Source: Guillardia theta CCMP2712 (taxonomy: Eukaryota > Protista > Cryptophyta). Taken from it: 63,930 nucleotides of DNA. Both the position numbers and the translations under genes were made by a program. The stretch's first letter is position 1, and each line of letters begins with the position of its first letter. Location: positions 53,170 to 117,099 of the forward strand of contig NW_005434580.1 in the NCBI RefSeq assembly GCF_000315625.1, written 5' to 3'. A model generated the notes under the pieces. It searched no databases, had not been told where the DNA came from, and worked only from the letters and a program-made list of their open reading frames with translations. This document shows positions 4,376 through 7,062 of the stretch, piece by piece.

Positions 4376-7062
4376 ATGTCTGAGTTGAAAGGAGTTCGCA
4401 AGAGCTATGAGATCGGAAAGACTATCGGCGAGGGATCATTTGCTGTGGTCAAAGCTGGAAGACACATTGAAACTGGCACCCCGGTGGCGATCAAGATTGT
4501 TTCAAAGAGGGATGCTTTGTTCAATGAAGAGTCACTGGATAGAGAGATTGCGACTATGATGCAATGTGATCATCCTAATTGTGTTGCACTGTACCAGGTG
4601 AATCATTTGGTTGGTCCCTCGCTCTCTGATGAAAATCTGCAGGTGTTTGACGAGCCTCAGAATACCTATCTCATCCTCGAACTGATTACTGGGGGAACCG
4701 TCATGGATCGTATCGTGGAGTTGGACATGTGCTCAGAGCACTTGGCATGCAATGTCACTAAGCAAGTTTTGCACGCCTTGCAATACCTTCACAACATTGG
4801 AATCATTCACAGAGATCTGAAGCCAGAAAATATCCTCTACGCATCGAATGACCCAAGATCACCTGACTACAACACCATCAAACTGGCTGACTTTGGGTTG
4901 GCTAAGTTCATGACTGGATCCGGGGCGATGAAGACCATTTGTGGAACTCCTGCTTACGTTGCTCCTGAAGTGTTGAGCCAGGAGGGGGATGCACCGGAAG
5001 GATACGATTGCAAGGTTGAGATGTGTTTCAACATTTGTAGGCCTCTGACATGGCTGTCAAGATCGATTTGTGGTCTCTGGGTGTTGTCGTTTATGTAATG
5101 CTTTGTGGCTTTCCTCCCTTTGCAGATGAGAACCGGTCAGCTTGTTAGGAATATCTTCGATAATTCTGATATGTGAATATGGTTGTAGAGCGCTGTTGTT
5201 TGAACAGATCAAACGAGGAAAATATTATTTCCTGTCGCCGTATTGGGACTCTGTATCAGATCAGGCGAAGGTACTTATTGTTGCCACGACTTTGATGTTT
5301 TCCTGACAACCCTTTGTAGGACATGGTTTCGAAGATGATTGTCGTGAATCCCGAAGATAGGTTAGACACGGCTCAGGTGCGGAGTGAACATGCCTTCAAA
5401 GCAAGTTGTAAACCTAATTTGCAGTGCCTCAACCATCCCTGGATTATGAATGAGGATACTGCCTCCACTACCCGACTACACGCGTATATCATAGAGATCT
5501 TGTCATTTGTGGTTGGTAATGCCAACAACTCAGTTCCCATCGTGCCTTTTTGCTTATTCGGAAACTGAGAATATTCGAGAGCATTGGTATGAATTACGTT
5601 GTTTGTCCAGGTTCATTCTGATTTGTAATCTTCCAGATGCAAGGGTTTTGCAAGAGATTGCTTCAAAACTCCGATCACTGAAGGTTCCGGCTGGAAAGTA
5701 TGTGATTCGAGCTGGTATGCATCTTTCCTTCCGTCGTTGTGCTCTGAATGTCTGGAAGGCGAAGTTGGTGATAGTATGTACTTCATCGACAATGGTGCAG
5801 TCCAGGTGAGTTGTTGACTTGCGGTTGTGAACGTCCTCACAAAATCATGTAGGTCTTGTGCAATGGCAGCCCCATCGATCACCTGCAGACGGGTTTGCTT
5901 TCGTCGCCGGAACTTCATTATTTCTGACCTTGAACATCCCTGCAGGAGACTTTTTTGGAGAGATTGCTCTTACAGTCTCCAAGGAACGCATCGCAGATGT
6001 TGTTTCCCTGGGATGCGATGCCTCCCATGCGAGACAAAGGGGCATTCAGGACGGAGACTCGGGGCCTGCTGAACTGCTACAGGTGAAGATGTCAGTCCTC
6101 TCTTAATCAAACTGATACGTGTGCGGTTGTCAGTTGCTGAGAACAGATTTTGAAGAGCTTATGGTCTGCCTTCAGGTTGTTGGATAAGTACTGTAATAAC
6201 TTGACTCGCAGGTCAAATATCCAGTGTTGAAAAGCCGCCTTGCGTTTATCGGGCAGGTCAAGATCTACCACGACGATACTTTCAGTCGAAATGATGTTGA
6301 TATATCAGGCTCGCGTTCGCCGCCAAGCGAATGCAGTTGCCAGGGAACTCGGTCTTCAGGAAGAGGCAAGACAGTGCTGGGGTTCTGCTGATAGCACTTA
6401 TGTGATTGCAGAATTCGTCGAAGAGTGCCGAAGCGGATCCTCAACAGGTGAGCATGAAGGCACCGTACCGTGATGCCTGACACTGACCTGTCGCCCAGAC
6501 TTTGCGGTCACGCAATGAGTTCAAGCAGAAATGGAAGAGCCTACGATTGATCAAGGTGGGCATGTTCGACATGGTCTGAAGGGTCCTGAGCGATGGGTGC
6601 AGGGTGAAGAGCTGGAAGGAGAGTTGGGCGTTGGGACTGGGCACCTTGCGAAAAAGCTGAAGAAAAACTCAAAACGAGCCTCAAGTCAAGGTGCAGGCCG
6701 TCAGTGCGATGGATGTGTGAATTGATGCTTGAGAATGACAGGAAGTTGGCTTTTCCGATCTTGGACCAACAGTGGTATGATTTCTTGCCGATCGTGACGC
6801 ATTTCCTGAAGGATCTTCTTGTTGCAGGGGAGGGAAAAAATTTTGATATTGGCTACTTCCTTCTCAGCTTTTTATGTGAGCAGCCGACTGCGAATTCCTT
6901 TCTTTGTCACCGCCCGCCTAAACGCCTGCCTGCCTGCCTGCCAATCTCTGTGTTGTCTGTTGTTCGTATTAACTTGTTCTTGTTTTGCGATCAGGTGCAA
7001 CTGCGTCTGCTGCGTTGGTTGTTTATATCCTTTCGGACATAACTGTGTATATCAATGCTTGA
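4376..7062 (+). CDS. CaMK-group Ser/Thr kinase with C-terminal cyclic-nucleotide-binding domain and putative transmembrane tail
   Basis: Kinase motifs [65 protein letters not shown] and HPW. Spliced downstream exons give a CNB domain ([21 protein letters not shown]...[19 protein letters not shown]). The final exons give [33 protein letters not shown]. Roughly 18 short introns. Confidence 0.88.

Follow-up and report, generated by a model that had tools for sequence, protein, structure and literature searches.

A calmodulin-kinase-type catalytic domain joined to a cyclic-nucleotide-binding domain and a putative membrane tail in the cryptophyte Guillardia theta

Does a locus of the cryptophyte Guillardia theta CCMP2712, publicly annotated as two genes, encode one protein kinase with its own cyclic-nucleotide sensor and membrane anchor? 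The locus lies within a stretch of 63,930 nucleotides (nt) of contig NW_005434580.1 (hereafter, the window; all positions are those of the window). An earlier note, made from the letters alone, had proposed that positions 4376-7062 encode a calmodulin-kinase (CaMK)-type catalytic domain followed directly by a cyclic-nucleotide-binding (CNB) domain, a basic linker and a hydrophobic C-terminal helix. The textbook control of kinases by cyclic nucleotide monophosphates (cNMP) is that of PKA and PKG, both of which are built on AGC-group catalytic domains. In the protein described here, and in the family to which it belongs, the CNB sensor is set behind a calmodulin-kinase core, at the position held by the calcium sensor in the calcium-dependent protein kinases (CDPKs). 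To all appearance the family adds to PKA and PKG a third route to a kinase controlled by cAMP or cGMP. The open reading frame (ORF) itself was already public, in part under a misleading automatic name; the novelty lies in recognising the class, its junction and its anchor swap.

One transcript for kinase, CNB domain and tail

The coding sequence is on the + strand and comprises 20 exons and 19 introns, as established from transcript joints and translation. It begins with the ATG at 4376 and ends with the stop codon at 7060-7062, the same limits given by the earlier note; an in-frame stop is present 15 nt upstream of the ATG. Local translation of the exon model gave an uninterrupted frame of 560 codons. 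The coding introns are 44-53 nt long, except for the final one (119 nt), and 18 of the 19 have GT-AG borders, the remaining one (6366-6411) being GC-AG. The only change made to the earlier model concerned intron 2, which spans 5015-5061.

Three transcript contigs obtained in three different studies, X1 (1876 nt), X2 (1917 nt) and X6 (2334 nt), map to 4195-7164 with zero mismatching letters. All three omit identical stretches, corresponding to the introns, so the coding joints are crossed within single transcript contigs. Fifteen of the exon joints were tabulated; five others were placed by means of the coordinates in the contigs' own records. The spliced 560-amino acid (aa) product is identical, at every residue, to a transcript ORF present in the database (P0263), on which the whole-protein searches and fold predictions were run. 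The kinase, the CNB domain and the tail thus belong to a single transcript, and not to the separate ones that the earlier note had named among the outcomes that would disprove its proposal. The features of the locus are as follows (UTR, untranslated region).

4195-4259 (minimum extent), +: 5′-UTR exon 1; from contig pieces and joint 4258>4308
4260-4308, +: 5′-UTR intron of 49 nt, GT-AG; joint present in X1, X2 and X6
4376-4597, +: exon 1, aa 1-74, with the glycine loop GEGSFA and Lys40 of VAIK; Pkinase E 9.5e-12 for the exon alone
4643-5014, +: exon 2, aa 75-198, including APE; Pkinase E 2.8e-33 for the exon alone
5062-5135, +: exon 3, aa 199-223; Pkinase E 2.4e-5
5189-5270, +: exon 4, aa 223-250; joints and translation
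5320-5376, +: exon 5, aa 251-269; joints and translation
5425-5483, +: exon 6, aa 270-289, in which the kinase ends (HPWI) and the junction starts; joints and translation
5534-5586, +: exon 7, aa 289-307, covering the conserved junction and the first helix of the CNB; joints and alignment column counts
5637-5714, +: exon 8, aa 307-333, CNB; joints and translation
5759-5805, +: exon 9, aa 333-348, CNB; joints and translation
5853-5892, +: exon 10, aa 349-362, CNB; joints; the intron on its 3′ side lies directly before DFFGE, a position common to the paralogues
5946-6082, +: exon 11, aa 362-407, CNB including the phosphate-binding cassette; joints and translation
5954-5998, +: phosphate-binding cassette, aa 365-379; Gly366, Glu367, Arg376 and Ala378 invariant, Ile377 variable
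6134-6163, +: exon 12, aa 408-417, CNB strand 8 and helix B; joints and structure model
6212-6256, +: exon 13, aa 418-432, CNB helix C; joints and structure model
6309-6365, +: exon 14, aa 433-451; joints and translation
6366-6411, +: GC-AG intron of 46 nt; joint 6363>6410, with two ambiguous letters
6412-6447, +: exon 15, aa 452-463, linker; arithmetic on the X2 record and identity to P0263
6499-6555, +: exon 16, aa 464-482, linker with a basic amphipathic stretch; joints, identity to P0263 and structure model
6603-6690, +: exon 17, aa 483-512, basic linker; joints and translation
6742-6774, +: exon 18, aa 512-523, Trp-rich, adjoining the predicted membrane helix; loose ends of raw reads at 6740
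6828-6875, +: exon 19, aa 523-539, N-terminal half of the hydrophobic helix; loose ends of raw reads at 6827
6995-7062, +: exon 20, aa 539-560 and stop, second half of the helix and 9-residue tail; contig pieces 6995-7164
7063-7164, +: 3′-UTR, reaching the end of X1 and X2

The loose ends of the raw RNA reads available coincide with the exon borders at 6742 and 6828. At the 5′ side, X1 starts near 4237 and X2 near 4195, while X6 extends, unspliced, upstream of the UTR exon to before 3900 (about 3697-4258). This extension may be a longer 5′-UTR, or the overlap of a neighbouring transcript merged during assembly.

The reference annotation lists two models at this locus. GUITHDRAFT_160105 (316 aa) corresponds to residues 1-289 followed by intron read-through, and GUITHDRAFT_154946 (144 aa) to residues 417-560, beginning at an internal Met. 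Pfam detected only the kinase in the former and gave no match in the latter. If these models were correct, the locus would hold a kinase-only gene and a small, unrelated one. X1, X2 and X6, however, connect all the parts; the CNB core (residues 290-416) is absent from both models although its exons are spliced in transcripts; and the same 560-aa ORF is found in the transcriptomes of G. theta and Hanusia phi. The two-gene annotation was therefore rejected as having almost no chance of being right, both models being fragments of the P0263 sequence. Since the gene is split in the reference and its CNB core is missing from the two models, domain surveys based on the G. theta proteome miss this architecture.

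The 90% cluster of P0263 contains, besides P0263 itself, three other proteins: the two reference fragments and the H. phi orthologue P0170. The latter is 97.9% identical over 560 residues; its 12 substitutions all lie at or before residue 509, and the last 51 residues are unchanged between the two species. UniRef automatically names P0170 "cGMP-dependent protein kinase".

A CaMK1-like kinase followed by a CNB domain

Pfam analysis of P0263 identified a Pkinase domain at residues 11-276 (E 9e-73) and a cNMP_binding domain (PF00027) at residues 322-383 (45.4 bits against a cut-off of 27.5; E 7.9e-12). Both matches are far beyond chance. When the exons were searched one by one, the kinase was confirmed in exons 1-3; the exons for the CNB domain, the linker and the tail gave no match because each encodes only 10-45 residues.

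The solved kinases closest to the catalytic domain were CaMK1D, CaMK1 and CaMK4 (E about 1e-75), followed by DCLK1, CaMKII, CHK2 and the CDPKs, whereas PKG scored 5e-58. A fold search likewise matched CaMKs to the kinase part. Lys40, Glu57, HRD, Asn137, DFG and APE are all present, and are invariant in an alignment of 36 family sequences. Pfam found neither Pkinase_C (the AGC C-terminal tail) nor any EF-hand family in P0263. Judged by its nearest relatives, the catalytic domain is thus CaMK1-like and not of the AGC group, and looks active, which agrees with its earlier description as an intact CaMK-type domain. The PKG identity conveyed by the UniRef name was rejected: the kinase is CaMK1-like, Pkinase_C is missing, and the CNB domain is single and C-terminal.

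Each chain carries one CNB domain (fold extent about 291-445), located C-terminal of the kinase. In sequence, Plasmodium PKG comes closest to it, the CNB-D providing the best stretch, and PKA RI comes next. An AlphaFold model of residues 286-444 (predicted template modelling score, pTM, 0.72) showed an eight-stranded β-barrel flanked by helices. Foldseek searches with this model retrieved HCN, the CNB-D of Plasmodium falciparum PKG with cGMP, PKG I and the CNB-B of PKA RI-alpha, with template modelling (TM) scores of 0.72-0.75 and E values of about 1e-11 to 6e-13. Gly362, Phe365, Gly366, Glu367, Leu370, Arg376 and Ala378 are invariant in the 36-sequence alignment. The cassette at 365-379, with its Gly-Glu and Arg-x-Ala, bears out the earlier claim that a cassette-containing CNB domain follows the kinase, and the domain would be expected to bind cAMP or cGMP. 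Here and in the protein's own clade Ile follows the cassette Arg; most relatives have Thr at this site, and one clade has Val. The earlier note had left ligand preference open on account of this Ile, and the variation among clades is in line with that caution.

What, then, replaces the usual regulatory segment of a CaMK? Cryptophytes also possess CaMK1-like kinases without a CNB domain; these are about 330 aa long and 62-66% identical to the present protein in the kinase. In these sisters, HPWI is followed by a classical regulatory tail, ...EQLKKFAARNKLKKAINTV..., which has the CaMKII-type autoinhibitory and calmodulin-binding pattern. This CaMKII-like tail (...LKKFAARNKLKKAI...) occupies exactly the position of the CNB domain. 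In the protein studied, no canonical autoinhibitory and calmodulin-binding segment of the ...LKKFAARNKLKKAI... type is present after the kinase; the CNB domain begins there instead. The earlier proposal that the CNB domain sits where a CaMK has its calmodulin regulatory segment is thus upheld by the CNB-less sisters.

The junction between the two domains (about 277-303) doubles as the first CNB helix in AlphaFold models, and its residues 287-303 are nearly invariant, being among the most conserved stretches of the 36-sequence alignment. In alignments with solved relatives its start coincides with the CaMKI regulatory helix, although the likeness is limited to the first turns. At alignment column 289, Ser is found in 23 sequences, Ala in 10 (including the present gene) and Gly in three, with Lys or Arg at -3. 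This resembles a substrate/pseudosubstrate pattern, placed approximately at the site of CaMKII Thr286. The position of the junction, its conservation and the Ser/Ala motif led us to propose that autoinhibition may be exerted through it.

Beyond the CNB domain, full-length AlphaFold modelling (mean predicted local distance difference test, pLDDT, 74; pTM 0.67), confident for the kinase and the CNB domain, predicted residues 449-532 to be disordered and 530-559 to form a helix (pLDDT 57-73). The linker is basic, with 21 Lys plus Arg per 103 residues. Residues 533-551 form a hydrophobic segment with a mean Kyte-Doolittle hydropathy of 2.29 over 19 residues, the usual threshold for a membrane segment being 1.6, and only nine residues follow it. 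These values fit the basic linker and the C-terminal helix of about 20 aa read earlier from the spliced sequence. The hydropathy scan revealed no further candidate membrane segment, the next best (1.74) being the buried kinase helix 201-219. The N-terminus, MSELKGVRK, is polar and does not resemble a signal peptide. Tail-anchored proteins are defined by one hydrophobic segment, lying no more than about 30 residues from the C-terminus, in the absence of a signal peptide or other membrane segment, and the last 31 residues (530-560) probably form a hydrophobic helix of this type.

One stretch of the linker deserves separate mention. Residues 464-482 (6499-6555) are basic and amphipathic, a helix being predicted with low confidence at 461-482, and the stretch 466-479 (F-x-K-x-K-W-K) is reminiscent of the Trp-anchored calmodulin site in CaMKI. 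It was found in Guillardia and Hanusia only, and may constitute a second input, by Ca2+/calmodulin.

A cryptophyte family with different putative membrane devices

When the kinase part was scanned in full against 1.84 billion representatives, seven of the 150 best matches carried a CNB domain, all seven of them belonging to one family. That the CNB domain occurs, among these 150 nearest kinase domains, only in the protein's own family supports the earlier view of a separate kinase-CNB fusion. A word-based search using the nearest full-length member as query found about 75 proteins with Pkinase plus cNMP_binding, the named members of which are all cryptophytes (Rhodomonas, Hemiselmis, Cryptomonas, Hanusia, Guillardia and Baffinella). 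A word search with the CNB region returned family members only, and then bacterial CNB proteins; since it sees only relatives sharing 5-residue words, it is not proof of absence elsewhere. An atlas feature search listed Pkinase plus cNMP_binding clusters labelled Chlorophyta, Ciliophora and Bacillariophyta, for which the domain order is not given, and a shape search retrieved CaMKs and one unlabelled cluster of a kinase-then-CNB fragment. No oomycete protein appeared among the nearest relatives in the kinase-part scan or the word-based searches. Table 2 of a survey of the Phytophthora infestans kinome records cNMP-binding domains on AGC- and CAMK-group kinases without discussing them (PMC3019232). 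The literature searches brought up no paper that characterises this family or any CaMK bearing a CNB domain on its C-terminal side.

The clades of the family differ both in the residue that follows the cassette Arg and in their C-terminal ends:

P0263, P0170, P0210 and the deep branch P0185/P0186: cassette Arg followed by Ile; C-terminal hydrophobic helix preceded by a Trp-rich stretch
Sister clade: cassette Arg followed by Val; basic C-terminus ...KKGxxGKxxxMFKS
Remaining clades: cassette Arg followed by Thr; C-terminus in most cases polybasic with a CaaX box (CVQS, CSQQ, CTQS, CIQQ, CVVS...)

The type of anchor therefore co-varies with the residue after the cassette Arg, an association from which testable hypotheses about the subfamilies can be drawn. 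The clade with Ile and a hydrophobic helix had a support of 99* in the tree; P0185 and P0186, its deep branch (51-52% identity), also end in a hydrophobic helix. Cys at -4 is present in 21 of roughly 60 family sequences, a frequency that looks far above chance. Given the polybasic stretch and CaaX of other clades and the helix found here, membrane attachment looks like a property of the family that is achieved with different devices: the CaaX members would be lipidated, the present protein would be inserted in a membrane, and its clade seems to have replaced lipid anchoring by a transmembrane tail. N-myristoylation was also considered. The CaaX and MFKS subfamilies share a conserved Gly2 (MGILSKG, MGIFxKG), which this protein lacks; as Lys at position 6 departs from the usual pattern, the modification is no more than a lead.

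The G. theta genome contains at least eight further kinase-CNB loci, one of which ends in ...RRWKACVQQ. The paralogues have far fewer introns than the 19 found here, and share the one directly before DFFGE. Two of them lie in tandem, about 4 kb apart, on another contig (G000:C28:647258-651868; L005, L008, L009), and it is one of these that has the polybasic stretch and the CaaX end ...RRWKACVQQ. Two divergent loci with long open frames may be degenerate family members: L004 (G000:C27:29645-33043) has a good CNB domain, with no kinase detected by Pfam in the 400 residues upstream, and L007 (G000:C24:62384-65800) has a kinase and a CNB-like part below Pfam's reach. A further member, P0283 (cluster of P0207), is deposited as protein MGB1605837.1 of a metagenome-assembled genome of a Promethearchaeia archaeon; most likely, a eukaryotic (cryptophyte-like) contig was mis-binned.

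Proposed regulation and comparison with known kinases

The scheme that we infer, from ligand binding through autoinhibition and activation to membrane insertion and the choice of membrane, is as follows. Through its tail anchor the enzyme would be held at a membrane, on the cytosolic side. At rest, the junction, whose residues also form the first CNB helix, would keep the kinase off from the site used for autoinhibition in CaMKI and CaMKII. Binding of cAMP or cGMP to the cassette would then shift the CNB helices and pull the junction off, turning the kinase on. Parallel arrangements would be the switching of CDPKs by Ca2+ through their calmodulin-like domain, and that of PKA and PKG by cNMP. 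Taken as a whole, a membrane-anchored CaMK1-like kinase that is autoinhibited by its junction and switched by cNMP at its CNB domain is the explanation that we favour, with somewhat better than even chances of being correct. Several observations weigh against it. The residue after the cassette Arg, Ile, is unusual; Glu replaces the usual Pro before this Arg; and an insert of ~15 residues separates CNB strands 7 and 8. With these three traits, the sequence gives no guide to affinity and selectivity. For a basic-x-x-Ser/Ala interpretation of the junction, position and motif are the sole grounds, and the raw RNA run provided just 49 reads, all of them from the 3′-end and on one strand.

The same traits of the CNB domain would suit a different role for it. 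It could be a structural or dimerisation module, or bind a ligand other than cAMP or cGMP, as in the case of the trypanosome PKA regulatory subunit, with the kinase being controlled otherwise. In its favour are the selectivity site, occupied by Ile, Val or Thr, the Glu or Gln that stands for Pro before the Arg, and the hairpin insert between strands 7 and 8. Were it so, control could come from activation-loop phosphorylation, or from Ca2+/calmodulin acting on residues 466-479, for which the predicted helix at 461-482 and its likeness to the CaMKI calmodulin site could be invoked; that stretch, however, is limited to Guillardia and Hanusia and was modelled with low confidence. Further, not one of the 36 relatives departs from Gly366, Glu367, Arg376 and Ala378, by which the ribose and phosphate are held, and the best fold matches are all true nucleotide-binding domains. 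We therefore consider a CNB domain without a cAMP or cGMP switch unlikely, and the same judgement applies to the modes of control that it would entail. Another possibility is that the kinase is indeed a cNMP-regulated CaMK but soluble, its hydrophobic C-terminus serving as a protein-protein contact or a degradation signal; the moderate pLDDT of the C-terminal helix would be compatible with this. Against it stand the hydropathy of the segment, well above the threshold and nine residues from the end, the lack of any other candidate segment outside the kinase core, the preservation of the helix (unchanged in Hanusia and retained in the 51%-identical sister branch), and the polybasic and CaaX membrane device borne at the same end by other clades. 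A soluble enzyme thus appears quite improbable. The favoured scheme can also be extended to the whole family, which would then represent a third class of cNMP-dependent kinase in cryptophytes, with a CaMK1-type core inhibited through CaMKII-Thr286-like junctions of Ser or Ala (RII/RI-like) type, released by the CNB domain and bound to membranes, and in which anchors were swapped (polybasic plus CaaX in most clades, a tail-anchor helix here and a basic ...MFKS tail in the sister clade) with the selectivity residue (Thr, Ile, Val) changing in step. This wider proposal is tentative, and we place its chances slightly below even.

How does this architecture compare with those of known kinases? PKG also joins a kinase and CNB domains in one chain, its Plasmodium form provides the CNB domain closest in sequence, and it has Thr after the cassette Arg, as do most members of the cryptophyte family. 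Unlike the latter, it has an AGC kinase, two to four N-terminal CNB domains and an N-terminal segment for autoinhibition and dimerisation, rather than one C-terminal CNB domain. The PKG isoforms of apicomplexans are also held at membranes, in their case by acylation. PKA resembles the present protein in having a CNB domain whose N-terminal helix follows a basic, inhibitor-like motif, and the alternation of Ser and Ala at the junction motif recalls its RII (substrate) and RI (pseudosubstrate) subunits; it differs in its separate regulatory subunit, its AGC kinase and its docking/dimerisation domain, where here a single polypeptide contains one CNB domain and a CaMK. CaMKI, CaMKII and CaMKIV have the nearest catalytic domains, and the beginning of the CaMKI regulatory helix can be aligned to the junction, but in them a canonical calmodulin-binding segment, and not a CNB domain, comes directly after the kinase. 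The closest analogues in logic are the CDPKs, which combine a CaMK-type kinase, a short junction and a C-terminal second-messenger sensor, and which the search of solved kinases also retrieved, the alignments extending across the junction. Their sensor consists of EF-hands for Ca2+ and their acylation is N-terminal, in contrast with the CNB β-barrel and the C-terminal helix or CaaX of the cryptophyte proteins. Finally, GbpC of Dictyostelium, a characterised cGMP target, also has a kinase with CNB domains further C-terminal, yet it is a large Roco protein (LRR-Roc-COR-TKL kinase-RasGEF-GRAM-2 CNB) with an internal GTPase relay, and is unrelated in kinase group and size.

As a natural experiment, the family may reveal ways in which a CNB domain can control an unrelated kinase, and its members may be compact, single-chain, membrane-targeted kinases responsive to cNMP. 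It also bears on signalling in cryptophytes: cyclase domains number in the dozens in the G. theta genome, in which the class III cyclase domain was matched no fewer than 78 times. The set of CNB proteins in G. theta is rich beyond the kinase-CNB family. Two large open frames considered as possible canonical PKGs contain repeated CNB domains and, in the same frame, no kinase: L014 (G000:C107:8500-13500) has six within 821 aa, and L013 (G000:C85:323500-328500) has two within 898 aa.

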